Positions 5,012 to 24,264 of a stretch of DNA of 64,000 nt are shown one piece after another. The notes under the pieces are model-generated. The model saw only the letters and a program-made list of their open reading frames with translations. It was not told the DNA's origin and searched no databases. The stretch lies in the sequence record MF360958.1; one strand, given 5' to 3'. Numbering within the stretch: position 1 is the stretch's first letter; each line of letters opens with the position of its first letter. A program made the translations under genes and the position numbers.

Positions 5012-5289
5012 CTGCTAGTAATGCTCAAAGCGAAAGGGATAGTTTAAAACACTCTCATACTAATATGATCGTGGAAGAAAAATGGTAACATAAAGCAACG
5101 ACCATGTTTAGGGTATCACCCCGCCGACCAGAGCGTATCTGGCAGGCTTTATGGTGACATTGGACTGAAGTGATCAGAATGTGTGATGAAGATTCAAATT
5201 TGAACGAGTAGCGTGGTAGAGCTTGCGCGACACCCTAAACATGGTCTTTTACGCGCAGGTTGATGGTTCGAGTCCATCCTAGCAGGCCA
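5012..5289 (+). ncRNA. 278-nt tRNA-scaffolded ncRNA with ~190-nt D-loop insertion and 22-nt anticodon-position loop
   Basis: Acceptor CTGCTAG(5012-5018)/CTAGCAG(5279-5285)+G+CCA; T-arm GATGG-TTCGAGT-CCATC; D-stem GCTC(5023-5026)/GAGC(5219-5222); stem GCGCG/CGCGC; variable loop AGGTT. Confidence 0.8.
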
Positions 5290-5309
5290 AATTTATTATG
5301 GAGTGATTT

Positions 5310-5672
5310 ATGATAATATTTTTTATTATTTTATTACTGTGTATATTAGTTGCACTGGTTGTAAAAAAGAACAATAAAAAAAGTGAAGTTCTTTTAGATT
5401 GTAGTAATGAAAAATGCCAATGGAATAATAATCAACCATGCCCTTATAAACTAACTAGATGTGATGATGGTAATAATGGATATAGAAGAAAAGTAGAAGG
5501 AATAAACGAATGTTGCAAAACTAGACAAACTAGAGTTAAAATGGCTAAGATAATTTTAGATAACAAAATAGAGACTAGAGGCACACAGATAATTAAAAAT
5601 TCTAAACAAGTATTCGAAAGACATAAACAAGATTATCCAGAAGAACATAAATTTCTATTTGGATTAAAATAA
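5310..5672 (+). CDS. hypothetical protein with N-terminal membrane anchor and Cys motifs
   Basis: Hydrophobic first ~18 aa; GGAG RBS. Confidence 0.65.
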   Translation: MIIFFIILLLCILVALVVKKNNKKSEVLLDCSNEKCQWNNNQPCPYKLTRCDDGNNGYRRKVEGINECCKTRQTRVKMAKIILDNKIETRGTQIIKNSKQVFERHKQDYPEEHKFLFGLK

Positions 5673-6123
5673 ATTTGACTATTAAGAATCGAACCTTCAT
5701 ACTGTATAGAACAAATAGGACTTAATTATGAAAGTAGTTTTCACAATATTAACACTCTTCCTGTTCTTTTTTGGAATGAGTATGTTTGGATTCTATGTTG
5801 AATATGACTCATTTGCAGCCATTGATGCTCAGCATTTTGTTCAATCCTGTCTTATAGCTGTAGTGGGTCTTTTATTTTCATGGCTAGTAAGTGCTATATT
5901 TTAAAACTATAATTAGGATATAAATATGTCAGATGTATTAACAATTTTTTGTTTCGGAGACTCCATGACAGCAACTGAATGGTCTATAAATAATGTTAAT
6001 AAAGGGGAATTTATTAGTTCAATATTTATATCATTTGTAGCAACTTGTTTTGTCTGGGAAACACTGTTAGAAGATTATTCTAAATACGTTGATAAAGATT
6101 AAAAAATCAACATCAAAAAATTC

Positions 6124-6160
6124 TTGACAATTGAGCATTTTTTCAGTAACATTATAAATA
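6124..6160 (+). promoter_or_regulatory. tandem sigma70 and T4-late-like promoter of the leader/tRNA operon
   Basis: TTGACA(6124-6129)-N17-TAACAT(6147-6152), followed by TATAAATA(6153-6160). Confidence 0.75.
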
Positions 6161-6196
6161 AGATAAACAAACGAATTAAACATTAAGGTAATTATT

Positions 6197-6283
6197 ATGC
6201 GTACTAACACAACAGTTAATCAGTATCAACTACAACAACTACCACTGGTTCTCTATCCCTATAATGGAGGGAAGGGCTGTTGA
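6197..6283 (+). CDS. attenuator leader peptide MRTNTTVNQYQLQQLPLVLYPYNGGKGC (28 aa; below the ORF-track cutoff)
   Basis: AAGGT RBS 7 nt upstream of ATG; control codons CAG TAT CAA CTA CAA CAA CTA CCA CTG GTT CTC TAT CCC TAT; the 3' end encodes attenuator segments 1 and 2. Confidence 0.85.
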   Translation: MRTNTTVNQYQLQQLPLVLYPYNGGKGC

Positions 6284-6345
6284 CGTGCGTGTAATATAAA
6301 CATGCAACGAATTCAAAAAGCCCTTCCAATTGGAAGGGCTTTTTT
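6251..6345 (+). promoter_or_regulatory. transcription attenuator: protector 1:2, antiterminator 2:3, terminator 3:4
   Basis: 1:2 CTCT-a-TCCCT(6251-6260)/AGGGAAGGG(6268-6276); 2:3 GGAAGGGCT(6270-6278)/AGCCCTTCC(6319-6327); 3:4 AAAAAGCCCTTCCA/TGGAAGGGCTTTTT plus U-run. Confidence 0.85.
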
Positions 6346-6365
6346 ATTGGGTTTTAGAAAATTTC

Positions 6366-6450
6366 GGGGATGTGGTGGAATTGGGATACACGGTTGCCTT
6401 AGAAGTAACTGCCTTCGGGCTTGGGAGTTCGAGTCTCCCCATCCCCACCA
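6366..6450 (+). tRNA. tRNA-Leu(TAG)
   Basis: GGGGATG/CATCCCC acceptor, GTTGC-CTTAGAA-GTAAC anticodon arm, long variable arm, encoded CCA. Confidence 0.95.
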
Positions 6451-6490
6451 AAACAATTGAGAAAGAAAGAAGTATAGAGAAATAAAGAAA

Positions 6491-7018
6491 ATGATAAAAG
6501 AAGAAGAAATTTGGAAAGATGTTGATGATTATCCAGAATATTTTATGATCAGTTCTTTTGGTAGAGTATGGTCGAAAAGAACTAATAAAATATTAAAGCA
6601 AACAATTGGAAAAACAGGTTATCCAGTAATATCTTCTAAAATAGGTGGTAGAAAAGGTAAATCAATTTGTAAAAAAGTTCATCGTTGGGTTGCTAATGCA
6701 TTTATAGATAATTTAAACAATAGATCCTGTGTTAATCATATCGATGGGAATAAAACGAATAATTATTGGAAAAATCTTGAATGGTGTACGTACAGTGAGA
6801 ACACAAAACATGCTTATAAGAACAATTTAATTGAAGCCAAATGTGGCGAAGAACATTCTTCATCAGTTTTAAGTTTAGATTTTATTAAACAGATAGAAAA
6901 TGAATACGTGCCATATTCTAAAACAAATGGATTAAGAGCTTTAGCAAGAAAATATAATGTAAAACATAATACATTATCAAATGCCTTAAACAATGTGAGT
7001 AAATATTACGGGAAGTAG
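6491..7018 (+). CDS. NUMOD4-HNH free-standing homing endonuclease inside the tRNA operon
   Basis: EIWKDV..Y.ISSFGRV NUMOD4; VHRWVA.AFI..VNHIDGNKTNN..NLEW HNH; last codons overlap tRNA-Pro. Confidence 0.92.
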   Translation: MIKEEEIWKDVDDYPEYFMISSFGRVWSKRTNKILKQTIGKTGYPVISSKIGGRKGKSICKKVHRWVANAFIDNLNNRSCVNHIDGNKTNNYWKNLEWCTYSENTKHAYKNNLIEAKCGEEHSSSVLSLDFIKQIENEYVPYSKTNGLRALARKYNVKHNTLSNALNNVSKYYGK

Positions 7019-7084
7019 CTCAAGTGGGAGAGCACGCGGTTTGGGACCGCGAGGTTGGGGGATCGTGACCCTCCTTCCCGACCA
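7009..7084 (+). tRNA. tRNA-Pro(TGG)
   Basis: CGGGAAG/CTTCCCG acceptor, CGCGG-TTTGGGA-CCGCG, CCA; atypical T-loop ATCGTGA. Confidence 0.92.
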
Positions 7085-7098
7085 GACATGTAAGTAGT

Positions 7099-7176
7099 AG
7101 CTGACTGAAGGGAATTGGTATACCTTTCTGATCGAGAGTCAGAAGCGTCCCGGTTCAAGTCCGGGGTCAGCTACCA
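7099..7176 (+). tRNA. atypical tRNA with anticodon GAG (Leu decoding), C33 and short variable loop
   Basis: AGCTGAC/GTCAGCT acceptor +A+CCA; AAGG/CCTT D-stem; TCTGA-TCGAGAG-TCAGA; CCCGG-TTCAAGT-CCGGG. Confidence 0.75.
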
Positions 7177-7190
7177 ACATTTAGGAAAAT

Positions 7191-7276
7191 GGAGCGGCTG
7201 GGCACACTAGGGGAGCCCATCGGACTGTAAATTCGACGCGAAAGCTGTATAGGTTCGACTCCTATCCGCTCCACCA
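7191..7276 (+). tRNA. tRNA-Tyr(GTA)
   Basis: GGAGCGG/CCGCTCC acceptor, TCGGA-CTGTAAA-TTCGA, variable arm, CCA. Confidence 0.93.
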
Positions 7277-7317
7277 TTTTTTAATAGCATTATTGTTAAT
7301 AATGCTATTGCAGAGTT

Positions 7318-7472
7318 TAGGATGTAGCTGACATTGGTATAGGCGCATGGGTGGTTGACCATGTTGAGGATTACGCAACGGTAACAGGTTAGTGGCAATA
7401 TACTAGTTAAGTTGGCATTGATACTACCAATACGCGCCTCACTTGTGGGTTCGATTCCCACCATCCTAACCA
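7318..7472 (+). ncRNA. 155-nt tRNA-like RNA with 8-nt anticodon loop and ~80-nt variable region
   Basis: TAGGATG/CATCCTA+A+CCA; T-arm GTGGG-TTCGATT-CCCAC; CATGG-GTGGTTGA-CCATG; TGAGG(7365-7369)/CCTCA(7437-7441) closes the insertion. Confidence 0.75.
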
Positions 7473-7537
7473 AACATTATAGAGGTAAAATATGAAATAC
7501 CATATGGAAGAATGGGAAACAGGTTCTAAAGAATAAT

Positions 7538-7614
7538 AGGGGAGTCGCCAAGTGGTCTAAGGCGCTAGGTTTTGATCTTAGTATGCGGAAGTTCGAATCT
7601 TCCCTCCCCTGCCA
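7538..7614 (+). tRNA. tRNA-Gln(TTG)
   Basis: AGGGGAG/CTCCCCT+G+CCA; CTAGG-TTTTGAT-CTTAG. Confidence 0.93.
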
Positions 7615-7617
7615 AAC

Positions 7618-7645
7618 AAAGCCCTCTCAATTGAGAGGGCTTTTT
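7618..7645 (+). terminator. intrinsic terminator ending the tRNA operon
   Basis: AAAGCCCTCTCAATTGAGAGGGCTTTTT perfect palindrome plus U-run. Confidence 0.9.
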
Positions 7646-7732
7646 ATATTGTCTCAAAGTATATATGATTGAGGGGTTGTTTTAAATATTATTTCTTGAT
7701 ATAATAGTAATTAGTTAAAAGGAGATATAGTT

Positions 7733-7981
7733 ATGAAATCAATTTATACAGTAATGTGGGTAGAGAATGAAGGGCTGCGTTTTCCTAATGTGTATCATCA
7801 AGTATATGTATATGCAGATGATCATAAGGATGCTCTTAGGAGATTTAATAAAAACCTAAGAGATGGTAATAAACAATGTCTTACAGTATCCAGTAAACCA
7901 CTGCCGGAAAAATTTTCTGATCTTCCTTTGGGGATCGCTGTTACAAAGATTGAAGTGTTGGATTATCCGGGTGTTGAATAA
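7733..7981 (+). CDS. hypothetical protein
   Basis: AAGGAGATATAGTTATG RBS module shared with 26981 and 27520. Confidence 0.7.
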   Translation: MKSIYTVMWVENEGLRFPNVYHQVYVYADDHKDALRRFNKNLRDGNKQCLTVSSKPLPEKFSDLPLGIAVTKIEVLDYPGVE

Positions 7982-8259
7982 CTATTCATTATAATTTGCG
8001 AGGAAATTAATATGCGGTATTTAGCGTTTTTTATTACTAATATTGCAACAATTGTTCTATCATTGATGTTAATTAGTATCGTTGGAGATACTATTATCAA
8101 TGTATTGTTTGTTGTATTAGTGTCAAGTTTGATCACACCATTAGTAGGGAAATATTTATTGGAATATTTTTATTTTAAAGGACTATGAGAAATAGTGTAT
8201 TATATTGAGAAATATATTTTTAAATATTATAACTGTTCATAGAAATTGTGGAGAAAAAT

Positions 8260-8652
8260 ATGTCTCACAGAAGTGATGATGAAAAAATCAAAGATTACAT
8301 TAATCAAATCAATAACAAATGGTACAAAACAGAGAAAAAAGAAAATATGAAGGAACAAAAAGAAAACATCAGAGAAGGTGTTATTGTTGCTTGGATTTGT
8401 ATTATTGTTATTGCAATTTTAAGCTTGACGAGTTATTTGATTCTTGAAGATTGTGCGGATGGACAACTCATTATTGGTAATGGCTGTAAAATGTCTGACA
8501 ATTATGGCGAAGCATTTACTATAGCAATGTTGATGTCTATAGTTATTTGGATTGGTATTCTCATTGCATTATTTTATCTAAAGCTACTTTTTATTAATAC
8601 ACCAAGGCTTATAATTTGTAAAATTAAAGAAAAACGTCTTGACAAACGCTAA
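8260..8652 (+). CDS. hypothetical membrane protein (two TM helices)
   Basis: Start moved to ATG 8260 after GGAGA; two hydrophobic stretches. Confidence 0.6.
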   Translation: MSHRSDDEKIKDYINQINNKWYKTEKKENMKEQKENIREGVIVAWICIIVIAILSLTSYLILEDCADGQLIIGNGCKMSDNYGEAFTIAMLMSIVIWIGILIALFYLKLLFINTPRLIICKIKEKRLDKR

Positions 8653-8689
8653 GGATATGTGACATACTATATATCCTTAGTCATGGGGT

Positions 8690-8816
8690 ATCTACTAAAG
8701 CTTTGTGCAGTGGATCAAGTGGGCTTGAGGACAGACATTGTGTCTGTCAAACGGTTCGATTCCGGGGCGCTGTAATCAATTGTGTAGTTAAGAGACAAGG
8801 CAAAGCTTTAGTAGAT
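8690..8816 (+). ncRNA. structured ncRNA: cloverleaf-like domain with T-loop on a 16-bp terminal stem
   Basis: ATCTACTAAAGCTTTG/CAAAGCTTTAGTAGAT perfect IR; inner stems TGCAGTG/CGCTGTA, TCAAG/CTTGA, GACAGACA/TGTCTGTC, CGG-TTCGATT-CCG; TTGACA promoter at 8639. Confidence 0.65.
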
Positions 8817-8831
8817 TATTTTTAAACAATG

Positions 8832-8973
8832 GGCTGTAGCTGCGGAATCTTTAATTGATAGCGTGATGTGAGTTAAAGATTATGGCCAAAGCGAGACTGT
8901 CAGTATTATTTCCTAATCACGCCTCTAGGTTTAATACTGACGGTTGAGGGGTTCGAATCCTCTACAGCCGCCA
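8832..8973 (+). ncRNA. 142-nt tRNA-like RNA with two long hairpins whose loops are complementary
   Basis: GGCTGTAG/CTACAGCC+G+CCA; TTCGAAT T-loop; AATCTTTAA/TTAAAGATT and CTGTCAGTATTA/TAATACTGACGG hairpins; loop GCGTGAT(8861-8867) complementary to ATCACGC(8916-8922). Confidence 0.75.
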
Positions 8974-9016
8974 AATTTTAAATAACGCTGATAAACTCTT
9001 ATTAAAAGGTATATGT

Positions 9017-10108
9017 ATGTCACAACTTAAAACATCGTTTTCTGATCTTGATACTATTGTTAAAGTTATTCAATATGATGAAGATAGTGTTACTGACTAT
9101 CTGAAACCAGCGGTATATTCAGTAGATTACAACTTGCTAGATGGATTTTTCCTTAATAAGCATAGTTCTCATTTTGAACAACCAGATAAAGTGTACGGGA
9201 AAATTCATCGTCGCGTTGGAAAAATTATTCATTCATATAGCAACAGCGAAAGTTCTTTTGGTGTTTTACTGAGTGGGTCAAAAGGTTCAGGAAAAACAAT
9301 GACCTCTTGTATTACAGCCAATCGCTGTATTCATGAACTAGGTCTTCCTATTATTTTGGTACAAAATGAATTTAATGCTTTTGAACTTTCTTCTTTTATT
9401 CAAAAGCTTGGCGAAGTCGTTGTATTTTTTGATGAATTTGGCAAAAACTTTAAAAATGAAGATGGAAATCAAAATGGTCTTTTAACACTATTTGATGGTA
9501 CTGGTTCCGATAAGCGTCTAGTTATTCTCACGGAAAATAATGTTTGGGATATTAATAACTTCATGCTAGAACGGCCCGGAAGAATTCACTATCATTTTCG
9601 TCATGATAAACTTGATGAAGAAATGGTTCGAGAATATTGTTCTGATTATGATATTCCTGAAAATAAAATTGAACAAATTTGTCTTCTTCGTGAATCATCA
9701 ATGGATTTTTCTTTTGATACACTGCAAGCGGTCGTTACTGAATACTTAAAATATCCTGATGATATCTTTTCACTTGTAGAAGATTTGAATATCGAACAAC
9801 CTATTTCTATGTCTCAAAAAATGTTGGAAATTACAGAAATTACTGATCAGCAAGGAAATTCAAGAACACTATGGAATAAACGTCATAAAACAAACAATGT
9901 TGTTTTTCCAGAAGGATTTTCTGAGACAGAACTTTTTGTCAATGATGTTGATGAACAAGATTGGAGAATTGTCTTATTAGATTGCGGATCTATCGTAAAA
10001 CGAGAAGGTAATAACTACGTATTCCATACATCATTTGATAATGATCAAACAGAACATTTAGTTATTAAAGGTAGATACTATCAAGATAATTTTAAAAAAT
10101 CGTTTTAA
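9017..10108 (+). CDS. AAA+ family ATPase
   Basis: Walker A GSKGSGKT, Walker B VVVFFDE, ERPGR arginine finger. Confidence 0.88.
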   Translation: MSQLKTSFSDLDTIVKVIQYDEDSVTDYLKPAVYSVDYNLLDGFFLNKHSSHFEQPDKVYGKIHRRVGKIIHSYSNSESSFGVLLSGSKGSGKTMTSCITANRCIHELGLPIILVQNEFNAFELSSFIQKLGEVVVFFDEFGKNFKNEDGNQNGLLTLFDGTGSDKRLVILTENNVWDINNFMLERPGRIHYHFRHDKLDEEMVREYCSDYDIPENKIEQICLLRESSMDFSFDTLQAVVTEYLKYPDDIFSLVEDLNIEQPISMSQKMLEITEITDQQGNSRTLWNKRHKTNNVVFPEGFSETELFVNDVDEQDWRIVLLDCGSIVKREGNNYVFHTSFDNDQTEHLVIKGRYYQDNFKKSF

Positions 10109-10117
10109 TCATGCAAA

Positions 10118-10248
10118 GTTCGGGTAGCTTAAAAGGGTGCAATCGGTTTAGATGAGATCCATGGTATCATTTATTCTTGATTACATCGACAAAGCGGACA
10201 GGACATAGGCCCCCTGTCATGGTGGTTCGAATCCATCCCCGAGCACCA
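10118..10248 (+). ncRNA. 131-nt tRNA-like RNA lacking a canonical anticodon loop
   Basis: GTTCGGG/CCCGAGC+A+CCA; GGTGG-TTCGAAT-CCATC; hairpin GACAGG/CCTGTC before the T-arm. Confidence 0.7.
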
Positions 10249-10261
10249 TACAATAGAACGA

Positions 10262-10377
10262 GTCGCCAGATAGTTTCGGTGCTTACGATTCTGGCTTTGG
10301 CGGGCACAAGCCTACGCGACAACAGCACCCTTCGCATTAACCTTGGAGTATAGATGCGAGGCCGGAGGAAACCCCTC
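10262..10377 (+). ncRNA. GC-rich pseudoknotted RNA element following the tRNA-like RNA
   Basis: GTCG/CGAC, CCAGA/TCTGG, GGC/GCC, loop GGTGCT(10278-10283) with AGCACC(10324-10329), TCGCAT/ATGCGA, GAGG/CCTC. Confidence 0.5.
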
Positions 10378-11119
10378 ATAAACCACTATCAATCATAATA
10401 TCTCCATAGACTGCTAAAAATTGATTATCAAACCACACTTCTTTATGATCTTTAATATTATATTTAAAATTTGAAGTAGAAGTTAAATCAAATTTTGTAG
10501 GAGTGAAGTTTGTTTTTATAAAATTATAAAGACCGTCATTGATAATCGTATCCTTAATATTTTCAATTTCTGGAAAACTTTTTATTAAATTTTCTCTAAC
10601 ATTAGTTTGTTTATTATCAAATTTTTTCACGGTATTAACTAAATCTTTATATGTTTCAAAACCTTCAAAACTTTTGCCTAACATTTCTGATAATTCTTCT
10701 AAAAGATCAATATAAGTATTGAGATCTTTCATAGGTAAATCAAAAGATGCGTTATGCCATATATCACGTTTAGGGCATACGCCGATTTTCGAACCGTTTT
10801 TAGGAAATACTGTATAAACCGTCCCAAAGTTTCGAGCATAATCAGGATTGGTTGTACAAATAACACTCCTATCTGGATATTCTTCCCACCATGGCGCTTC
10901 ATTAATAATTAAATTATAAAAATTAGCGGTATTTCTGGAAATACGGCCTTCTAATGGATTCATTATTTTAAAATTATCAGGTTCATTATCTCCAAAACCT
11001 TTGTATATACCATACCCTTTTTTATACTGCGCATATGCTTCTGAAAAATCATTTTCCAAAAGCTCTTTTAATTTATCAATATTATCGCTTTCATTAAGTA
11101 TTAAATCTTGTATTTTCAT
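10376..11119 (-). CDS. putative virion-packaged ART-fold-like protein (paralog family)
   Basis: Start moved to MKIQDLILNES; YKG..R...DRSVICTT..YARNFG.VY.VFPKNGSKIGVCP..DIW shared with 22759, 16749 and 56252. Confidence 0.6.
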   Translation of the reverse strand: MKIQDLILNESDNIDKLKELLENDFSEAYAQYKKGYGIYKGFGDNEPDNFKIMNPLEGRISRNTANFYNLIINEAPWWEEYPDRSVICTTNPDYARNFGTVYTVFPKNGSKIGVCPKRDIWHNASFDLPMKDLNTYIDLLEELSEMLGKSFEGFETYKDLVNTVKKFDNKQTNVRENLIKSFPEIENIKDTIINDGLYNFIKTNFTPTKFDLTSTSNFKYNIKDHKEVWFDNQFLAVYGDIMIDSGL

Positions 11120-11204
11120 AATATTACCTAATCTTTTAAAATATTTATCTAAAATTTTCATTGACATATATTACTAAATTACGATATAATTATATTAATT
11201 AGTA

Positions 11205-11951
11205 ATGAGGTATATTGTTATGAATCGTAAGCTTTGGGATGTTAATGAATTCAATAAAATCAATCTTCCAGAAATTGTAGGAGAAGTTGAAAATAAAACA
11301 GAATTTGACACCCATCGTGGTACTCGCGTTCTTGATATGCCGGTGAAAATGATCGGTACAGATGTGCGTATCCCTGATTTTGTTCATGAAAGTTTTTCTG
11401 AAATCGTTCATAAAGCAATTGCCCATGAACAAAGTAAATATGGTGATATTTCAGATCATTATGTGTATATCACTATTGATCAAAAATACGTTTATGAAGG
11501 TAAAACGGGTCGCCGTCCCGGTGCTCATTCTGATGGTTATATTGAACGGGATAATCGTCAAATCGACATTACCGAAGATTCCTATGATGTTGTCAGTCAA
11601 GAAGAAGGTGAAGTGTCACATACGTACATCGTAACCAATAAATTTCCTACGGAATTTTTTGCGGTTCCGTTTCCTCTGGATAATACAGACTGTGAATCAT
11701 CTCTCAAAACATTTGATGAAATTGCAGATAATGCTTATCCTATTAAATATCCTTTATACACAATTTTGAAGCTCGATCCTTACGTGGTACACCGTTCATC
11801 AATTGCAGATGAAGATTCATATCGAACCTTTATGAAAGTGAGTATTTCAAAGAAACAATACCGTCGAAAAGGTAATACTATTAATCCACTGTTCAATTAC
11901 GATTGGACGATGAAAGAACGAGAAAATAATTCAAGAAATCATCCATGGTAA
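11205..11951 (+). CDS. putative 2OG-Fe(II) oxygenase-fold protein
   Basis: RPGAHSDG (HxD), distal VVHRS, then RTFMKVSIS. Confidence 0.6.
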   Translation: MRYIVMNRKLWDVNEFNKINLPEIVGEVENKTEFDTHRGTRVLDMPVKMIGTDVRIPDFVHESFSEIVHKAIAHEQSKYGDISDHYVYITIDQKYVYEGKTGRRPGAHSDGYIERDNRQIDITEDSYDVVSQEEGEVSHTYIVTNKFPTEFFAVPFPLDNTDCESSLKTFDEIADNAYPIKYPLYTILKLDPYVVHRSSIADEDSYRTFMKVSISKKQYRRKGNTINPLFNYDWTMKERENNSRNHPW

Positions 11952-12015
11952 TTAAAAATATTGATTTATTTTTAGTGGGTGTGATATAATATCATTATTA
12001 ATTAGGAGTAGTATT

Positions 12016-12210: not shown

Positions 12211-12240
12211 GTATAGATTTATACTCTAAAGGATACCTAA

Positions 12241-12720: not shown

Positions 12721-12730
12721 AGAAGTTGTT

Positions 12731-13787: not shown

Positions 13788-13807
13788 TCAAAAATGGAGA
13801 TATCAAT

Positions 13808-14556: not shown

Positions 14557-14616
14557 TGTTGAATTCTTACTATAATTTTGATACACTATATTTAGTAATG
14601 ATCAGGAGCACATAGT

Positions 14617-14898
14617 ATGAGTGAAGAAATGACCCTTCGTGATTGGATCAACCTTAAAAGTCCCGACTATCTTGCCGAAAATGATGGGTTTTCAGAAAAA
14701 ATTCTTTCTCTCAAAGTAGATAAAGAATATCGTAGCCATGAAAGTATGCCATTTCCTCAAACCAAATTTCTTTATCGCTATGTTCATATTTGGGTTCTTT
14801 TTGAAGATGGTAGCGCAGTAGGTTTGAACGAATCTCCACGGAGTGGACATTCTATGCCTCGTCTTGGAAAAAAGACAGTTAGTAAAAAACTTCCTTAA
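14617..14898 (+). CDS. hypothetical protein
   Basis: AGGAG RBS. Confidence 0.7.
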   Translation: MSEEMTLRDWINLKSPDYLAENDGFSEKILSLKVDKEYRSHESMPFPQTKFLYRYVHIWVLFEDGSAVGLNESPRSGHSMPRLGKKTVSKKLP

Positions 14899-14913
14899 AA
14901 ATTTGGACATTAT

Positions 14914-15624
14914 ATGTTAATGACTTTAGAAGACTTCAAATATATTTTTGAAAATCGCAATATAAAAATTGTCTATAGAGATAAAGACCATTCTATGCGA
15001 TTATATAAAGGTGATTATTGTTTTCCCCATGCTATCATACCATATAATGTATATCATTTTTGTGAACACAGTATTGATGTTTTTGCACGATTCTGGAAAA
15101 ATAATACTGTAACTAAATGGGAACAAATTGATATTAATCCCACCAAAGATAGTATTGAACATTATTTGAATACTACTAAAAATATTATTCATCTAAAATT
15201 AGAAATTCCACAACATCAATTTATTATTAGAATATTGCATTATATTTTTGAAGAACAATATAAAAAAAATATCAAAATGAGTCTATTTCATAATAAATTG
15301 ATGGAAGGCGAAAAAAGTTTGAAATTCTATAATGTAATTATTTTAAAATGTCACGATCCCGATTGGGAGCTTAGAAAACATCTACAAAGTTATAACTGTT
15401 TTAAAGATAAATTTACTTCTGACAGTAGGTCTATAGATGTGATATTATGGAGTGATGAAAATGGAGTATTTTCTAATGATGTTAAAGATTGGAAAAAATT
15501 AAAATTATTAATATTACAAAATCGTGAAACTATAAAACAAATAAAACTTAGTACTCCATCTGATATGAATCGTAATCAATTTGTAAGTTTTATTAACTGT
15601 TTAATGTATCTAAAAGACATGTAG
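14914..15624 (+). CDS. hypothetical protein, tandem paralog of 15631-16359
   Basis: MTLEDFKYIFEN...LWSDENGVFSNDVKDWKKLKL. Confidence 0.7.
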   Translation: MLMTLEDFKYIFENRNIKIVYRDKDHSMRLYKGDYCFPHAIIPYNVYHFCEHSIDVFARFWKNNTVTKWEQIDINPTKDSIEHYLNTTKNIIHLKLEIPQHQFIIRILHYIFEEQYKKNIKMSLFHNKLMEGEKSLKFYNVIILKCHDPDWELRKHLQSYNCFKDKFTSDSRSIDVILWSDENGVFSNDVKDWKKLKLLILQNRETIKQIKLSTPSDMNRNQFVSFINCLMYLKDM

Positions 15625-15630
15625 GAAATT

Positions 15631-16359
15631 ATGATTACACTCAAAGATTTTAAATATATTTTCGAAAATGATTTTATTATCGTAAAACAACGTTTTATTG
15701 ATAAATCGATACGTTTAGGTGAAAAACATTATGTAAGTTCTGGAAAAGTTTCATCTCAAGTTGTTTGTAATAATATTGCTAATAGTGTTGTTCTTTATGC
15801 AAAATACCACGATCATAATGGACTGAGCGGATGGGCCGAATTAAATATTAATCCTGATAAAGATTCAATTGAAAATTTTATAGAAAATACTGAGAAACTT
15901 TATGGTTTAAAAGTAGAATTACCTTTTCAACTTGATCTTCAGAAAATGCTTTATTATACGTTTAGACAAGATTATTATGACTGTCAATGTACAACGTATT
16001 ATCAAGATAATGCCTATTTTAATCTTCGTGAATGCCAAAAAGTTGTAAAAGGTTTTGATAATCATATTAGTCTATTTTTTAATAATAATAAATCTATTAT
16101 TGAACAACTTGAAAATAATGAACAGTTTAAAAATCATTATATAGAGATTTCTACCGGGTTAGAATTTGTATTATGGTCAGACAAACATGGAGCTTTTTCT
16201 AATGATGCTAAAGATTGGAGAAAGTTAAAACTATTTTTATTTGAAGACTTATCTCATAAGATGATTGGCCTTTCTTATAAACACAGTCATAGTTCGCCAT
16301 GGAATCGAGGAACATTTATTGATTTCATTGATGCATTAGAATTATTAGGGCAAATTTAA
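15631..16359 (+). CDS. hypothetical protein, tandem paralog of 14914-15624
   Basis: ITLKDFKYIFEN...LWSDKHGAFSNDAKDWRKLKL. Confidence 0.7.
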   Translation: MITLKDFKYIFENDFIIVKQRFIDKSIRLGEKHYVSSGKVSSQVVCNNIANSVVLYAKYHDHNGLSGWAELNINPDKDSIENFIENTEKLYGLKVELPFQLDLQKMLYYTFRQDYYDCQCTTYYQDNAYFNLRECQKVVKGFDNHISLFFNNNKSIIEQLENNEQFKNHYIEISTGLEFVLWSDKHGAFSNDAKDWRKLKLFLFEDLSHKMIGLSYKHSHSSPWNRGTFIDFIDALELLGQI

Positions 16360-16371
16360 GAGAATTATAAT

Positions 16372-16707
16372 ATGAAATTTTTTAATGAAACATACCAATA
16401 TCATGATATCGAACCTTGTGAAAAACATCCTGCTTACGAGGTTATATTTAAACCTCATGCTACGTGTGAACAATGTTTTGATATTTGGAGAAAACGCTGC
16501 ATCGATGAACTTGATTATAGGGCAATGGCGTATAAAGCCGCTGAAAATAAAGCTATTTCTTCTGACTTTTTTGATAAAGGATTTGTATTATATTGGAATC
16601 GATCAGGGGAATGCGTATGTATTTCTTTATCATGTCATAATTTCTGGTTCACAATCAATCAAGTTGAACAATTACATTTTGGTGAATCGTTTGTTTTTAC
16701 AACATAA
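16372..16707 (+). CDS. hypothetical protein with Cys/His motif
   Basis: CEKHP...CEQC. Confidence 0.65.
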   Translation: MKFFNETYQYHDIEPCEKHPAYEVIFKPHATCEQCFDIWRKRCIDELDYRAMAYKAAENKAISSDFFDKGFVLYWNRSGECVCISLSCHNFWFTINQVEQLHFGESFVFTT

Positions 16708-16712
16708 TATTT

Positions 16713-16720
16713 TATAAATA
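16713..16720 (+). promoter_or_regulatory. T4-late-like promoter
   Basis: TATAAATA 29 nt upstream of the ATG of a putative virion protein. Confidence 0.6.
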
Positions 16721-16748
16721 ATAGTAATAATAGAGGATAAGACTAATT

Positions 16749-17663
16749 ATGAAAATTAATGAACTTTTAAATGAATCATCTAATCAATATTCAGATGAAA
16801 AACTCTTTGAAATAATTTTAAATAGTAAATTCTATAACGATAATAAACATATTTTGGATTATGATTTTGCGCTGTTTCGAGGTATAGATGGAGAAGTTGA
16901 TACAAACACTATTCATAATTTTAAATTTCGCAGTAAACCCACAGATAGTAGTATATTAATACATGATATTGTTAATGAATTAAGTGAAGAACAGCTAGGT
17001 TTAGAAATTCGAAATCTTATGTTTGGTACAACCGATGCTACAGTAGCAGATGGATATGGAACCGTTCGTAATGTTTTTCCTATTGGAAATTATGAATTGT
17101 ATTATCATCCAGACGTAGGAGATTTTCTAACGGTTATAGCTAATGAAGATCGTCTTTATAGTGTTATCATAGAAGGTAATGATGATAATTTTTCGCATAG
17201 TATGCAAGATGAATTTGAACTGTTAATAGATAACGTAAATGATAATGATCAACAAACATTATCATCATGGTTTAAAGATACCAATATTGATCACATCAAG
17301 ACATATATTTCAGAAATTGTTGGCTTTACTATTGACTTAAATCGCGAACAACTTCATGAAAAAGCTCTTAAAATGGCAGAACGCTATATACAAGATAGTC
17401 TACTGCCAACTTATAATTTTGATGATGAACGAGAAGTAGCTAAAATCATAAGACATCTTTTTAAATTTGGTATAGATTTAATCATAGAATTTCTCGAAGA
17501 TAATATGAGAGGGTATATTGATGAAATAAACGAAGCAAATGACCTATCTGATACTACTATGGGTGGTGACGGTCATGAGATCATGATTTATTGTGAACAA
17601 TTTATCTTACTATCTACTGAACAATATGATGAATTTTTAAATAACTATCATAACGCTAATTAA
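16749..17663 (+). CDS. putative virion-packaged ART-fold-like protein (paralog family)
   Basis: MKINELLNES leader; LFRGI..R..P.D..EIRNLMFGTT..VADGYG.V..VFP. Confidence 0.6.
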   Translation: MKINELLNESSNQYSDEKLFEIILNSKFYNDNKHILDYDFALFRGIDGEVDTNTIHNFKFRSKPTDSSILIHDIVNELSEEQLGLEIRNLMFGTTDATVADGYGTVRNVFPIGNYELYYHPDVGDFLTVIANEDRLYSVIIEGNDDNFSHSMQDEFELLIDNVNDNDQQTLSSWFKDTNIDHIKTYISEIVGFTIDLNREQLHEKALKMAERYIQDSLLPTYNFDDEREVAKIIRHLFKFGIDLIIEFLEDNMRGYIDEINEANDLSDTTMGGDGHEIMIYCEQFILLSTEQYDEFLNNYHNAN

Positions 17664-17684
17664 TTATAAAACAATGGTGATAAT

Positions 17685-17927
17685 ATGAAATACATTGGTG
17701 CTGTTCTTCCTACAGTTATTCTTTATTTTGTGATAGTAGCTATACCTATATCCACTGTATCAATTTCAATCTATATGTTTTTTATAGGTAAAACTGCTAT
17801 GGATATTTTAATGTTTTTGGTCACAACAACATTTTCATTATGGTTTTTATTATTTTTTACATTACTATCAATTTATACTGTTAATTCTATCAAAGAACAT
17901 AGAAAAAAATGTAAAAAATTTAAGTAA
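17685..17927 (+). CDS. small membrane protein
   Basis: Two hydrophobic helices with a basic tail. Confidence 0.6.
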   Translation: MKYIGAVLPTVILYFVIVAIPISTVSISIYMFFIGKTAMDILMFLVTTTFSLWFLLFFTLLSIYTVNSIKEHRKKCKKFK

Positions 17928-17956
17928 TACATTTCCATACCTTTCAATGAAACTCC

Positions 17957-17964
17957 TATAAATA
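17957..17964 (+). promoter_or_regulatory. T4-late-like promoter
   Basis: TATAAATA upstream of the AGGAG RBS of 17989. Confidence 0.6.
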
Positions 17965-17988
17965 ATTAAAATTATAGGAGTTTTTTAT

Positions 17989-19107
17989 ATGCTTATTAAT
18001 GAAATCATCACCCATGGTAAAGGACCATTCATAGTTTATTTTCGAGGGGATTCTTGGCAATTTGAAGATGAAAGCGAAGAATTTGACTTTGAAAATAACG
18101 AATCTCATAGAAAATTTAAAGAAAAATTAGAACCTTATATTCAGCAAATGGTTGACGAGAAATTTGAATTTGAAGAAGGTAGAAATCTAGATGATATCTT
18201 AGGTGAACTTGAAGAAAGCTCAGAAATCATAGCTGGTACTATTGATGGGAATAGTTTTGAACTGTCACCCATAATAGGACTTAACTTTCGTCATTCTACT
18301 GCTAATAAAAATCTTCTTAAAATAATGGAAGAATACAATGTTGATAGAGTGGTTGCATATTATACACAATTTGATGAAACCGGGGAAGAAATGGAACAAG
18401 TTATTGAACATGGAAAGGAAGAATTTCTTGAACCATTAGAAAATAAAACGTTTTATCACGGTACAGAATTTAGTTCTTTACAAGAAATATTAAATAAGGG
18501 ATTAATGGCTGATGTGAATAAAACAAATTTTGATAATATTCATCACGAAGATGCTGTATTCATCACTATAAATTATGAGAAAGCAACATTCCACGCTATT
18601 CATGCAGCACAAAAAAATCCAGATACATTGCCCATTATTATTGAATTTGAAATACCTGATGTGAGTAAGCTTGTGTTAGATTATGATATTGCAATTGAGT
18701 TATATGGTAAAGAACATCCATTGACAATGAGTCTTAATTATGATGAAATAAATGAAATGGCTACCGGTAATATTGGTGCTGAAATATATAATGGTATACG
18801 TCATGGTATGAATAGTAATTATATAGATCAAATTACCGATAAATCTTCTCTAAACACAAAATTGGGAGTGTTTGGCTACAAAGGCCGCATAGCTGCTTCT
18901 AAAATTAAAAATATTCATATTGATAGAGAAGGAATAGATGCATGGGTTAAAGCTGATGAAGTCGGAATGGATTTGAAAGAAATTGGATATGATATGATGA
19001 ATTTCGTTAAAGATGCTGAAAGATTAAAACCTAAAGAAGTTCAATTAGCTATTGATAATGCTAGAGAAGATCTAGAAAGTGAAATGGAAGATGAAGACGA
19101 CGATTAA
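17989..19107 (+). CDS. putative virion protein with H-type ADP-ribosyltransferase/Tpt1-like domain
   Basis: MLINEII leader; FYHGT...ILNKGL...VFIT....A..HA...IIIEF. Confidence 0.65.
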   Translation: MLINEIITHGKGPFIVYFRGDSWQFEDESEEFDFENNESHRKFKEKLEPYIQQMVDEKFEFEEGRNLDDILGELEESSEIIAGTIDGNSFELSPIIGLNFRHSTANKNLLKIMEEYNVDRVVAYYTQFDETGEEMEQVIEHGKEEFLEPLENKTFYHGTEFSSLQEILNKGLMADVNKTNFDNIHHEDAVFITINYEKATFHAIHAAQKNPDTLPIIIEFEIPDVSKLVLDYDIAIELYGKEHPLTMSLNYDEINEMATGNIGAEIYNGIRHGMNSNYIDQITDKSSLNTKLGVFGYKGRIAASKIKNIHIDREGIDAWVKADEVGMDLKEIGYDMMNFVKDAERLKPKEVQLAIDNAREDLESEMEDEDDD

Positions 19108-19154
19108 TCATTGACGTAAACCTAGATGTGCTATACCATATAATAGTTATTTAC

Positions 19155-19230
19155 CTCGGGTTGGCAGAGTGGCTAATGCGCGGGACTGCAAATCTCGTTT
19201 TCGCCGGTTCGATTCCGGCACCCGAGTCCA
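19155..19230 (+). tRNA. tRNA-Cys(GCA)
   Basis: CTCGGGT/ACCCGAG, U73, CCA; CGGGA-CTGCAAA-TCTCG; promoter TTGACG(19111)-N17-TACCAT. Confidence 0.93.
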
Positions 19231-19245
19231 AATTAGGAAAAGGTT

Positions 19246-19650
19246 ATGCAATATGTTTTAAACGTCATCATGAACGAAAACCGAGATCGGGTTCTTCTTA
19301 TTCGAAAAAACCGCCCTAAATGGCAAAAAGGCAAATACAATTTTGTCGGTGGTAAAGTAGAAGATAATGAAAATGAATTTGAAGCTGTTATTCGTGAAAC
19401 AAAAGAAGAATGCGATCTCTATATCTATCCTCAACTTATTGGTACGATAAAAAGTAACGATTTTACAGTGTATGTGTATCGTTCTATTATTAATAACCTT
19501 TACGATGTTCAACAACAAACAGATGAATCTCTGGCTATCTTTAATGAAGATTCATGGGATTCTTTAAGAAAGTTAGGTGTTGAGAATGTTTCAGAAATTT
19601 TAGAGATTTGTGCTAAACAAAAACCTCAGTATTTTATTTTTAACTATTGA
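19246..19650 (+). CDS. Nudix hydrolase
   Basis: Nudix box GGKVEDNENEFEAVIRETKEE. Confidence 0.9.
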   Translation: MQYVLNVIMNENRDRVLLIRKNRPKWQKGKYNFVGGKVEDNENEFEAVIRETKEECDLYIYPQLIGTIKSNDFTVYVYRSIINNLYDVQQQTDESLAIFNEDSWDSLRKLGVENVSEILEICAKQKPQYFIFNY

Positions 19651-19709
19651 CAACTGTAATTATTTTTTGATATAATACTTCACGTAATGATCAATAAGAG
19701 GATTCATTA

Positions 19710-19910
19710 ATGAGTATTAAACAAGGCGACCAAATAGTTCTGAACAAGTGTGAAGATGCACAGGTTTACGATGTGAAAAGTGTTGAGGGTTTTAACCTCA
19801 CCGTTAATTACACAACCGAAAAAGGCACTGTCACAAAAGATCAAGTAATCGATGAGTGCATGGTTGCTGGTAAAATCGTTAAAGGTAAGGTAAAATATCT
19901 GAAAAAGTAA
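19710..19910 (+). CDS. hypothetical protein
   Basis: GAGG RBS; TTGACA-N18-TATAAT promoter at 19647-19676. Confidence 0.7.
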   Translation: MSIKQGDQIVLNKCEDAQVYDVKSVEGFNLTVNYTTEKGTVTKDQVIDECMVAGKIVKGKVKYLKK

Positions 19911-19915
19911 AGTAA

Positions 19916-20069
19916 TACCAAACAGCCAGATACCCTAAGATGTGATCCATCTAGCCCGAAACTGGTGATGTGTCCTATAAAAAGTATGCTTAATAGGGTT
20001 GAAATGGACACTAATTCAACTACAGGACTCGCAGGGTGGGTGGATATTCAACAACCCTGCACATTTTTT
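19916..20069 (+). ncRNA. structured intergenic RNA ending in a terminator-like hairpin
   Basis: CCAG/CTGG, AGATG/CATCT, GTGTCC/GGACAC, GTTGAA/TTCAAC, ACCCTA/TAGGGT; GCAGGGT/ACCCTGC followed by ACATTTTTT. Confidence 0.5.
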
Positions 20070-20097
20070 AAACTTTCTTAAACAATTTGAGAAAATT

Positions 20098-20736
20098 ATG
20101 TCTAAAAACTTTATTTCCATTTTTAATGCTAATTTTCCTGATGCTGAATATAATAGTTTATTTGTGTTTGGATCACGGGTTTATGGAAACACAACTGGAC
20201 TTTCAGACATTGATTACATCGTGATTAGTGATAATATGTCTTCAGCAAATATTCATGATTATATCAATGTTTCCTGTTATACGAATGAACAATTTAATAA
20301 ACTTATTCAGGATCATGAAATTACAGCTTTGGAAGTTTTATCACTATCTTTAAATAATGACTGCGAGAACTATTACGATGGCGATGTTCCTGAATTTTAC
20401 ATTGATCTATCAACATTGCGTTCTTCCATATCATCAAAAGCAAGCAATTCATTTGTAAAAGCTAAGAAAAAATTAACAGTAGATAAAGACTATGATTTTT
20501 ATTGCTCAATGAAATCACTTTTTCATGCAATTCGAATTTATGACTTTGGTAAGCAACTTGCCGAATACGGTTATATTCACAATTTTGAAAGTTGCAATGA
20601 TATTTTCTATAATATTCAACGAGATTATAATAGTTGTATTAATACCGAACAAATTTTAAAAGTAATTGACAATGTATATAAACCTACGTATAATCAATAC
20701 GCATCAGAATTCAGAAAAGTATGTCCAAAAGAATAA
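20098..20736 (+). CDS. Pol-beta-superfamily nucleotidyltransferase
   Basis: Start moved to ATG 20098; FGSRVYG...SDIDY motif; C-terminal KSLFHAIRI. Confidence 0.8.
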   Translation: MSKNFISIFNANFPDAEYNSLFVFGSRVYGNTTGLSDIDYIVISDNMSSANIHDYINVSCYTNEQFNKLIQDHEITALEVLSLSLNNDCENYYDGDVPEFYIDLSTLRSSISSKASNSFVKAKKKLTVDKDYDFYCSMKSLFHAIRIYDFGKQLAEYGYIHNFESCNDIFYNIQRDYNSCINTEQILKVIDNVYKPTYNQYASEFRKVCPKE

Positions 20737-21014
20737 ATTATGAGCAATCTTAAAAACAGAATTAATAAATTAAACAGGCGTAAGCAAAAAAACGCCAGCG
20801 GTTGAATAAAAAATATAACAAACTCATTGACAAACTTGAGAATCAATGTAAAAATCATAAATATGGAAAATAGAAAACACGACCCGATAATTTCATGGTA
20901 GATTTCAAACAAGTGTTTATGGTAATCTTATTCTATTTCAAAAATGTAAAGTTTGTAGTAAAGTGGAAGAATACGTTCCTAACCTAGAGAAGAAAAGGTA
21001 AATAAAGAATAGAC

Positions 21015-21090
21015 GGGCCTGTAGCTCAGCGGTAAGAGCAGAACCCTCATAAGGTTTTGGTCACTGGTTCGAATCCAGTCAGGCCCACCA
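21015..21090 (+). tRNA. tRNA with CAT anticodon, most likely Ile2 (lysidine type); elongator Met not excluded
   Basis: GGGCCTG/CAGGCCC+A+CCA; GAACC-CTCATAA-GGTTT; G1-C72 rules out initiator; C4/C5 and TGGTC resemble Ile2. Confidence 0.85.
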
Positions 21091-21111
21091 GTTTCAAAAA
21101 GGTAAAAAACT

Positions 21112-21390
21112 ATGGCAGTAAAGCCCGAAGAAGTTAATCGTTAAATAAAAATCAACAATAATCTTTAGACAGTATTGAAAGTCGGTTAAATTTTAAATTA
21201 AAGAACCAACCTCGAAGGGATAAAGACGATTACGTTCGTGAAAGTATTTTTAGTTTTGAGTTAAATATTGATCAGATACATTATAGATGAACTTAAAAGG
21301 TTATATTTAAAAGCTGGTTGGGCTTATGTCCATATTGAAAAAAAAACAGAACTATACAATCAGTTGAAGTAACGTTAAAAAGGTGGTAAC
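21112..21390 (+). pseudogene. degraded gene remnant between two tRNAs
   Basis: AAGG RBS and MAVKPEEVNR*, then plausible peptides SLDSIESRLNF and IIDELKRLYLKAGW in shifted frames. Confidence 0.45.
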
Positions 21391-21403
21391 ATATAAACTT
21401 ATT

Positions 21404-21486
21404 CTCCCGTGCCCCAACACTGGCCTTCTAAGCCAGTCCTTAACGTTGGAAGGAGGTATGAGGTTCGATTCCTCCACGGGAGGCCA
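21404..21486 (+). tRNA. D-armless tRNA-Arg(TCT)-like RNA with 8/4 acceptor/T fold
   Basis: CTCCCGTG/CACGGGAG+G+CCA; GAGG-TTCGATT-CCTC; CTGGC-CTTCTAA-GCCAG; variable hairpin TCCTT/AAGGA; only ~8 nt where the D-arm should be. Confidence 0.75.
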
Positions 21487-24053: not shown

Positions 24054-24150
24054 ATAATATTGACATTACCAAATAAAGATGTTTAAATGTGAATAATAAG
24101 GCATTGGGAATAGCGAAGTAACTAATAATCATACTACTTTTCTATTCCAA

Positions 24151-24224: not shown

Positions 24225-24264
24225 GATTTAACAACAATGAGTAGTTAATTATAATGCTATTCAT

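Follow-up and report, generated by a model that had tools for sequence, protein, structure and literature searches.

The tRNA region of Salicola phage SCTP-2

Salicola phage SCTP-2 (MF360958.1) is a jumbo phage of 440 kb whose source is a solar saltern. The stretch analyzed here, called the window, is 64,000 nucleotides long and matches positions 310001–374000 of the record with 100% identity. The window has a GC content of 30%, and the record annotates no RNA genes over it. ARAGORN has identified seven canonical transfer RNAs (tRNAs) in the window, all on the plus strand and all with an encoded CCA, and five of the seven have gathering-level support in Rfam. The ARAGORN/Rfam scan placed tRNA-Leu-TAG at 6366–6450, tRNA-Pro at 7009–7084, tRNA-Leu-GAG at 7099–7176, tRNA-Tyr at 7191–7276 and tRNA-Gln at 7538–7614, and ARAGORN placed tRNA-Cys at 19155–19230 and tRNA-Met at 21015–21090. 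Interspersed with them, also on the plus strand, are five tRNA-like elements: element 1 (5012–5289), element 2 (7318–7472), element 3 (8832–8973), element 4 (10118–10248) and element 5 (21404–21486). A sequence-only reading of this DNA had described the five as a dispersed family of tRNA mimics that retain the acceptor stem, the T arm and the encoded CCA on a remodelled lower half, and had proposed that they may serve as decoys or as carriers of RNA cargo. The structure, relatives and probable roles of these five elements are reported below, above all those of element 5.

The tRNA region extends about 23 kb upstream of the window and is, as a whole, roughly 40 kb long with 22 canonical tRNAs. 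The 50 kb directly preceding the window (L008), which bring the scanned part of SCTP-2 to 114 kb, contain 15 of these tRNAs together with an annotated peptidyl-tRNA-hydrolase-like (Pth-like) gene. Arg, Asn and Ala are the sole amino acids without a canonical tRNA in the scanned 114 kb. Promoter-like sites are present at 4914 and 8639 and terminators at 6315 and 7618. Among the canonical tRNAs lies a gene for an HNH/NUMOD4 endonuclease (6491–7018), an AAA ATPase gene is found at 9017–10108, and a NUDIX gene (19246–19650) and a nucleotidyltransferase gene (20098–20736) separate tRNA-Cys from tRNA-Met. Element 5 is adjoined by the gene of a cREC domain protein of the cyclic-phosphate-processing type (21791–22201, plus strand; Pfam 1.3e-10), and a Thg1-like 3'-5' polymerase, also a nucleotidyltransferase, is encoded at 25459–26199 (plus strand; Pfam 7.1e-25). 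Judged from their domains, the cREC protein and the Thg1-like polymerase beside the tRNA cluster are a tRNA end-repair toolkit.

Features shared by the five elements

The elements were checked with a scanner that looks for a T loop of the form TTCRANN on a paired T stem, an acceptor 3' strand, NCCA and a complementary 5' strand upstream. In addition to the canonical tRNAs, the scanner returned elements 1, 2 and 4 (acceptor and T stems of 7/5) and element 5 (8/4) with exactly the ends given above. In element 3 the acceptor and T stems stack to 11 bp in the canonical T-loop register, and only a one-base shift of the T loop brings the stack to 12 bp (7/5). Four of the five elements have perfect acceptor and T stems, and all five have an intact CCA. 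The structural reading of a retained top half on a remodelled lower half holds for the five elements, less cleanly for element 3. None of the five was called as a tRNA by ARAGORN or reached the gathering level in Rfam (29 bits for RF00005), the top RF00005 score being the 26 bits of element 4. A 7-nt anticodon loop with U33 and a purine at position 37 on a 5-bp stem is found only in element 5 (CUUCUAA) and is lacking in elements 1–4, none of which can, on its predicted structure, decode as it stands. No ARAGORN or Rfam call supported an assignment to transfer-messenger RNA (tmRNA); Rfam gave only fragments the size of a T arm, the elements are without a tag reading frame, and no acceptor stem has a G3:U70 pair.

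The internal complementarities proposed earlier for four of the elements are all present, with 15 nt perfect in element 1, 7 nt each in elements 2 and 3, and 5 nt in element 5, and by itself the complementarity is compelling only in element 1. All-against-all blastn of the five elements revealed no shared sequence but the T arm, with the further exception of elements 1 and 2, which match at 13/15 positions. Because the five share no sequence past the T arm, they are better regarded as a class than as a homologous family. The earlier observation was largely right, and it is the framing as a single family that is wrong. The five listed members are real, and the list was incomplete, since a structured RNA candidate at 8676–8820 and three odd genes upstream of the window had been missed.

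Element 5 and a family of predicted pseudoknotted tRNAs

Element 5 is a non-canonical tRNA(UCU) of 83 nt with an 8-bp acceptor, a 4-bp T stem, an encoded GCCA and no D hairpin. Its anticodon arm reads ACUGGC / CUUCUAA / GCCAGU. The place of the D stem is occupied by CCAAC (21414–21418, plus strand), which pairs with GTTGG in the variable region (21445–21449, plus strand) to form a helix named here helix X. Taken alone, a complementarity of 5 nt is of little weight (p = 0.077 by shuffling). Against the Rfam model of selenocysteine tRNA (tRNA-Sec, RF01852), its best match in Rfam, element 5 scored 31.5 bits, below the threshold of 47; its anticodon is UCU and not UCA, and it lacks the 6-bp D stem of tRNA-Sec. 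The alignment to this model recovers a long acceptor, a 6-bp anticodon stem, the CUUCUAA loop and an extra arm, with the 16-nt D arm reduced to 5 nt.

Searches with blastn have revealed homologs of element 5 in unrelated phages, six in all, with 76–80% identity across 80–93% of its length. These are the Acinetobacter phages ME3, Maestro and KARL-1, the Aeromonas phages AhSzw-1 (Demerecviridae, the family of T5) and Aszh-1, and the Escherichia phage Av-05. AhSzw-1 has two matching pieces, suggesting tandem copies. The homologs adjoin tRNA genes, none of the six records annotates them as RNA genes, and one is overlaid by a small open reading frame (ORF) on the opposite strand. A search of IMG/VR with the pattern CTTCTAA-N(26-40)-GGTTCGATTCCTCC found 103 matching stretches with 77 distinct sequences, mostly of 83–91 nt. 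The 8-bp acceptor is perfect in 97 of 110 pattern matches, and nearly all end in NCCA. The family spans at least four phage families or subfamilies.

An alignment of 57 distinct family sequences (A6) was analyzed by counting pairs against slid and shuffled controls. Standard pairs were found in 97.9% of the cells, compared with 40–52% with slid partners, and the covariation score was 0.709, compared with 0.08–0.14 for slid controls and reached by none of 500 shuffles. Covariation is seen at nearly every pair of the 8-bp acceptor and of the 5-bp anticodon stem, the T stem has 4 bp, and the anticodon loop CUUCUAA is invariant in all 57 sequences. Helix X (columns 17–21 and 53–57) is 99.3% paired, shows compensatory changes at four of its five pairs and occurs in 22 distinct sequence variants, each of them fully paired. 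Element 5 itself forms all 22 family pairs and aligns over its full length with the sequences of ME3, AhSzw-1, Av-05, Maestro, Aszh-1 and KARL-1. The pairing between the D region and the variable loop that had been noticed in one sequence is therefore validated by covariation in 57 homologs. Helix X links the strand that follows the acceptor to a strand of the variable region and so encloses the anticodon arm, and only 7–8 nt lie between the acceptor and the anticodon stem. A putative short variable stem that crosses helix X is detectable in every sequence, so that the D hairpin is replaced by a predicted pseudoknot; a point against this reading is that the variable stem is in different registers in different subfamilies. 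A near-invariant GG downstream of helix X might act as the D-loop G18–G19 at the elbow. ARAGORN called none of the 57 family members.

A scan of 185,579 species genomes (596 Gb) gave 20 stretches, 19 of them with the structure of the element 5 family. The bacterial contigs are from metagenome-assembled genomes or from isolates, many of them metagenome-assembled contigs of Verrucomicrobiales or Pyrinomonadaceae (Acidobacteria), and Spirabiliibacterium and others are also represented (L133–L152, GTDB). Several of these members are without an encoded CCA, and one lies on a contig of 1.28 Mb, so that the family may also be chromosomal in some bacteria. The small number of members in bacterial genomes (20 stretches, compared with 103 in IMG/VR) indicates that the family is mainly, and not only, viral. 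By these comparisons element 5 is clearly under purifying selection, and the family to which it belongs, conserved and hitherto without annotation, consists of predicted 83–91-nt tRNAs with the anticodon UCU and a pseudoknot in the place of the D hairpin. No description of the family was found in the literature searched, and it may be described elsewhere.

Probable role of element 5

The invariant loop CUUCUAA is that of E. coli tRNA-Arg(UCU). Canonical tRNA-Arg(UCU) is otherwise among the commonest phage tRNAs. Among the 103 IMG/VR loci, canonical tRNAs were found nearby in 71 and a canonical tRNA-Arg(tct) in only one. The codon AGA is used in SCTP-2 at 10.8 per 1000 codons, and no canonical tRNA-Arg was found in the scanned 114 kb. 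The invariant loop, the rarity of canonical tRNA-Arg(UCU) at these loci and the use of AGA without another tRNA-Arg together lead to the reading of element 5 as a decoder of AGA, and element 5 is probably the AGA decoder of SCTP-2. It would be charged and would read AGA for an AT-rich phage in a presumably GC-rich host, replacing the canonical tRNA-Arg(UCU).

Several observations weigh against this role. The loci behind the mutual exclusion with canonical tRNA-Arg(UCU) are no longer than about 14 kb. The discriminator base varies in the family (U in 24 sequences, A in 17, G in 15 and C in one), and A20 of the D loop, which is used by the arginyl-tRNA synthetase of E. coli, is absent from element 5. 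Given these two features, element 5 could carry another amino acid or none. As for the earlier proposal of decoys or cargo carriers, a canonical and invariant anticodon loop in an RNA that replaces tRNA-Arg(UCU) fits a decoder better than a decoy, and on the sequence evidence the decoy or cargo reading is probably wrong for element 5.

Element 1, the interrupted tRNA-Asn gene and elements 2 and 4

Element 1 is a 278-nt RNA, found by the scanner, in which the acceptor 5' strand (5012–5018) lies about 188 nt upstream of the remaining body. In the body, a D arm is followed by an anticodon stem (GCGCG/CGCGC) that closes a loop of 22 nt, and a T arm and GCCA complete the element. A 21-nt segment of the insert (5097–5117, plus strand) with the core GACCATGTTTAGGGT is 90% complementary, with 15 nt perfect, to 5229–5249 (plus strand) within the enlarged anticodon loop. 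The perfect 15-nt complementarity is far beyond chance, and the resulting 15-bp duplex would mask the loop. A search for an antisense target of the 15-mer elsewhere in the window returned only the 13/15 match inside element 2. The 3' body aligns to a tRNA-Asn gene outside the window (L008:38729–38850, or 298729–298850 of the record), with which element 1 shares the D arm, the GCGCG/CGCGC stem, the variable region, the TTCGAGT loop and G73, and the T and acceptor stems of the two differ by compensated changes. These likenesses indicate that element 1 is derived from a tRNA-Asn.

The sibling gene, tRNA-Asn(GTT), was found by ARAGORN with introns allowed and is interrupted inside the anticodon by an insert of 45 nt. 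The joined exons give a perfect stem and the loop CUGUUAA, and the 3' exon has 90% identity to tRNA-Asn genes of Pseudomonas phages, with the match beginning precisely where the exon does. In the window 9% of the codons are for Asn, and the cluster is otherwise without tRNA-Asn. The insert folds into a 6-bp stem, a 10-nt bulge with GG and a hairpin like a T arm, and in this model it looks like the top half of a miniature tRNA. Its removal might proceed by cleavage of the RNase P type followed by ligation. The junction pattern of the insert gave only chance matches in coding DNA when searched in IMG/VR.

In element 2, of 155 nt, the acceptor, the T arm and ACCA are present, the D arm is degenerate, and an AGGCGC/GCGCCT stem closes an insert of 88 nt. 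ATTGGTA (7333–7339) is complementary to TACCAAT (7427–7433) over 7 nt (p = 0.025), and the Rfam match of the element is confined to the T arm. In element 4, of 131 nt, the Rfam alignment has a GCUU/AAGC D stem closing a hairpin insert of about 56–61 nt in the D loop, followed by a GACAGG/CCUGUC arm where the anticodon arm would be, its loop of 10 nt lacking U33, and by the T arm and ACCA. The minimum free energy of element 4 has a z score of -2.5.

The tRNA-Asn gene bears on the possibility that the elements are interrupted tRNA genes whose inserts are introns, removed by a pathway undescribed in bacteria such as tRNA-processing nucleases together with an RNA ligase. The sibling becomes a perfect tRNA-Asn(GUU) once its insert is removed; this, the lack of another tRNA-Asn in the cluster, the exact exon boundary in the comparison with phage genes and the minihelix-like insert all favor introns. 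Lak megaphages have also been reported to carry 'enigmatic' tRNA introns, one possibly encoding a tRNA (PMC6784885). A single-insert model was tried by brute-force deletion within each element followed by ARAGORN. No solution was obtained for elements 1, 3 and 5, and elements 2 and 4 gave many weak and mutually inconsistent calls. The best forced models are Gly(ACC) with a 74-nt insert for element 2 and Ser(CGA) for element 4, and in these the anticodon stems contain mismatches, A34 or C37 is atypical, and rival solutions are many. For element 4, Rfam moreover places the insert in the D loop and leaves no loop with U33. Group I introns and small ribozymes gave no Rfam match within the elements at E <= 10 with permissive filters (RF00028 included), the inserts of elements 2–4, at 36–88 nt, are too short for a group I intron, and no bulge-helix-bulge motif was seen. 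An RNA ligase was not found in the window, to which the search was confined, by Pfam, PHROGs or PDB sequence search. Reduction to a canonical tRNA on removal of an intron, an outcome that the sequence-only reading had named as refuting it, was thus found for the tRNA-Asn sibling, outside the window, and cleanly for none of the five elements, for which introns are considered quite improbable.

Element 3 and the neighboring structured RNA

Element 3 is an RNA of 142 nt with an acceptor, two long hairpins (12 and 13–14 bp), a T arm and GCCA. The apical loops of the hairpins carry GCGTGAT and ATCACGC, a 7-nt complementarity with p = 0.015 by shuffling. The folding z score is -5.4 for the element and -4.8 for its arms. 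Directly upstream of element 3 lies a second structured RNA candidate of 145 nt (8676–8820, plus strand; z = -4.2), in which a perfect 16-bp helix closes three hairpins, one of them with a T-loop-like GGTTCGATTCC. This candidate is preceded by the promoter-like TTGACA at 8639.

The closest known analog of element 3 is RNAC (species 1 RNA) of phage T4, which is expressed and whose function is still unknown (PMC3014915, PMC9697503). RNAC (L007:1409–1547) is 139 nt long, lies at the end of the T4 tRNA cluster and folds into an acceptor-like stem, a pair of long hairpins and a T arm that carries GGUUCGAAUCC. Four divergent homologs from four genera of T4-like phages (T4, EcS1, UFV01 and NM4.3) were aligned, and the alignment supports the acceptor-like stem, the two hairpins and the T arm, with compensatory changes at 15 pairs. 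The apical loops UUGACG and CGUCAA are invariant and mutually complementary in the four homologs while the stems covary, which suggests a conserved kissing-loop fold. Conserved complementary apical loops in T4 RNAC are in line with the structural part of the sequence-only reading.

Element 3 and RNAC share a plan in which an acceptor and a T arm flank two hairpins whose apical loops are complementary, and elements 1, 2 and 4 differ from it. A further likeness is the setting, as RNAC and RNAD lie where the T4 tRNA cluster ends, next to a homing endonuclease gene, and the RNA at 8676–8820 before element 3 recalls rnaD before rnaC. In RNAC, however, the acceptor is broken into 3 + 2 bp and no CCA is encoded. 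Homology was examined with a covariance model of RNAC, which was built from only four sequences and is of low sensitivity; element 3 scored 7.3 bits (E = 0.67 in 5.6 kb), similar to ordinary tRNAs. Element 3 is accordingly described as an RNA with a predicted RNAC-like layout and not as a detectable homolog.

Origin and possible roles of elements 1–4

No homolog of elements 1–4 was detected by megablast or blastn in 50,697 phage genomes or by nhmmer in 1 Mb of fetched phage tRNA-cluster loci, and their exact 3'-end patterns found nothing in IMG/VR. A pattern search for the kissing loops of element 3 also found nothing. The loci of relatives of the flanking AAA ATPase (the nearest 53% identical) contain other odd T-arm RNAs and no homologs of elements 1–4. 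Shuffled sequences fold as well as the inserts of elements 1 and 2 do (z = -0.6 and -1.0). The lack of homologs and the poor folding of these two inserts count against a functional role and are what would be expected of decaying tRNA pseudogenes with insertions that are out of use; a tRNA pseudogene has also been reported in the relative XacN1 (PMC5852040). Decay is nevertheless hard to reconcile with acceptor and T stems that are perfect in four elements, a CCA that is intact in all five, the folding of the arms of element 3, the compensated stem changes between element 1 and its tRNA-Asn paralog, and the purifying selection on element 5. In addition, the GC content of the inserts is 36–42%, compared with 14–27% in ordinary neighboring spacers of this 30% GC genome, which argues against simple decay. 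Pseudogenes are for these reasons a distinctly unlikely explanation.

The reading that is favored here, with fair though not high confidence, is that the five elements are tRNA-derived genes of separate origin, element 5 belonging to the AGA decoder family and elements 1–4 being lineage-specific scaffold RNAs. Each element would be transcribed together with the neighboring tRNAs. As an acceptor/T minihelix of 11–12 bp and an encoded CCA are kept, each would probably also be matured like a tRNA, the minihelix being what RNase P and the trimming and repair enzymes of tRNA 3' ends recognize. Elements 1–4 would be stable RNAs on a tRNA scaffold, of the kind of T4 RNAC and specific to this phage lineage, with long hairpins or domains inserted at the D loop, the anticodon loop or the junction of acceptor and D arm, and with internal loop-loop or loop-insert pairings that would lock the lower half. 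As to what such RNAs might do, the best guess, a weak one, is the binding or titration of a protein that recognizes the top half of tRNA.

Decoys would go further, in that the elements would soak up anticodon nucleases, sensors of uncharged tRNA or other tRNA-binding defense proteins their top half being normal and their lower half either proof against cleavage or unable to signal. Genes for tRNA repair are numerous in the region (the Thg1-like polymerase, the cREC protein, the nucleotidyltransferase and the Pth-like protein), an abundance that points to pressure from tRNA-targeting defenses. Elements 1–4 cannot decode and yet keep the minihelix, and the anticodon loop of element 1 is masked by its duplex, as a decoy would have it. 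Anticodon nucleases, however, generally recognize the anticodon loop, which is absent from elements 1–4, and since these elements are unique to one phage a recurrent selective use cannot be shown. With element 5 better explained as a decoder, the elements are unlikely to be decoys.

A bolder account would join these strands. The element 5 family would be a natural D-arm-less tRNA that works on bacterial ribosomes by means of its covarying pseudoknot. It would persist chiefly in phages, its altered body being out of reach of host enzymes that attack or sense tRNA-Arg(UCU) or making the phage independent of host tRNA modification. SCTP-2 would have gone a step beyond with this strategy: in its tRNA-Asn gene the intron would be a miniature tRNA that tRNA-processing nucleases cut out before an RNA ligase rejoins the exons, and elements 1–4 would be further re-engineered tRNA bodies with regulatory or anti-defense roles. 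Taken as a whole, this account is speculative and is offered as a tentative possibility.

Further RNA candidates and neighboring genes

At least three further odd tRNA-like genes lie upstream of the window in L008. Among the candidates there, the sequence at L008:32465–32580 (292465–292580 of the record) follows a perfect TTGACA-17-TATAAT promoter and has two T-arm hairpins, an acceptor-like closure (GCTGTG/CACAGC) and no CCA; an annotated minus-strand ORF (gene 327) lies over it. An 84-nt tRNA-like gene at L008:47176–47259 has an acceptor and a T arm, no D arm, a central arm of 11 bp whose loop has 8 nt, and TTCCA as its tail, and was not called by ARAGORN. Within the window, about 350 nt in 24060–24440 are free of ORFs and follow a promoter-like TTGACA. 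This stretch has T-loop-like hairpins at 24196 and 24376 and a repeated AATGGGAGTTA motif and may be another structured RNA. Hairpin-bearing stretches rich in GC are conspicuous against the AT-rich genome at two places, one at 10249–10400, which follows element 4 and overlaps minus-strand ORFs, and one at 19911–20097 with 38% GC.

Odd RNAs are also found in other phage-like loci that bear the ATPase. Many T-arm hairpins without an ARAGORN call are present in these loci (L005:7860–8350 and 9397–9760; L003:2090–2180), including a 179-nt tRNA-like RNA with a second, internal T arm and a 91-nt one with an extended anticodon arm. A conserved RNA-like element of about 230 nt without an Rfam match lies upstream of the ATPase homologs (L002:9380–9620 and L005:9150–9400) in a Marinobacter prophage and a Vreelandella plasmid-like phage.

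Among the protein-coding genes of the window, the gene for the large subunit of ribonucleotide reductase (RNR; 30800–33469) is split by an intein with a LAGLIDADG domain, and an ORF of 3456 amino acids occupies 44022–54392 on the minus strand. A 372-amino-acid protein encoded just upstream of tRNA-Cys (17989–19107) has weak look-alikes of the ADP-ribosyltransferase fold (DarT, PARP and Arr) among ESM Atlas clusters. Pfam and PDB gave no match for this ORF, and the ADP-ribosyltransferase lead is weak.

Implications

If the RNAs of the element 5 family are charged and used, the structural range of tRNAs accepted by bacterial ribosomes and synthetases would be wider, and the apparent lack of the common tRNA-Arg(UCU) in many phage tRNA sets would be explained. 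Phage tRNA annotation would then need correcting, and the family would offer a natural scaffold for the engineering of orthogonal tRNAs. Because homologs of element 5 are present in phages of E. coli and Acinetobacter, the family can be tested in laboratory hosts. Elements 1–4 and the tRNA-Asn gene add cases to two old puzzles, namely the stable RNAs RNAC and RNAD of T4 and the 'enigmatic' introns of phage tRNAs.

Comparison with known systems

Outside the T4-like phages, tmRNA and the Y RNA-like YrlA resemble the elements in carrying an acceptor/T-arm module on a large non-tRNA body. The ends of YrlA RNA, however, are located in its Ro-binding stem and not in the acceptor. Devoto et al. (2019) have reported that tRNA genes of Lak megaphages contain short 'enigmatic' inserts distinct from group I introns, and that a tRNA fold is possible for one of these inserts (PMC6784885). 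Compared by description only, the interrupted tRNA-Asn gene of SCTP-2 fits this account, whereas a clean reduction to a tRNA is not obtained with any of the five elements.

The element 5 family is similar to the allo-tRNAs and to tRNA-Sec-like 8/4 tRNAs in its 12-bp acceptor/T branch, split 8/4, and in the extra arm of the variable region. Allo-tRNAs and tRNA-Sec keep the D hairpin in published structures. Of the features of allo-tRNAs, which have 8/4 or 9/3 branches, the family shows the 8/4 branch and lacks the D hairpin with its cloverleaf or five-stem junction; for element 3 the split of the branch is ambiguous. Mukai et al. (2017), as reviewed in PMC7609411, have shown that allo-tRNAs span 35 anticodons, whereas the anticodon of the element 5 family is fixed as UCU. 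The family also differs from allo-tRNAs in being mostly viral, with its 103 stretches in IMG/VR and 20 in 596 Gb of genomes.

D-arm-less tRNAs are known from mitochondria, where they include metazoan mt-tRNA-Ser(AGY) and nematode mt-tRNAs (PMC7609411, PMC12221289). Bacterial tRNAs have all been said to be canonical cloverleaves (PMC11551756), and the non-canonical tRNAs listed in one review include none without a D arm except in mitochondria (PMC7609411). Like the mitochondrial tRNAs, element 5 has no D hairpin and keeps the acceptor, anticodon and T arms. The element 5 family differs from them in its normal T loop, in the covarying helix that replaces the D stem, in the pseudoknot, and in its home in phages and bacteria.

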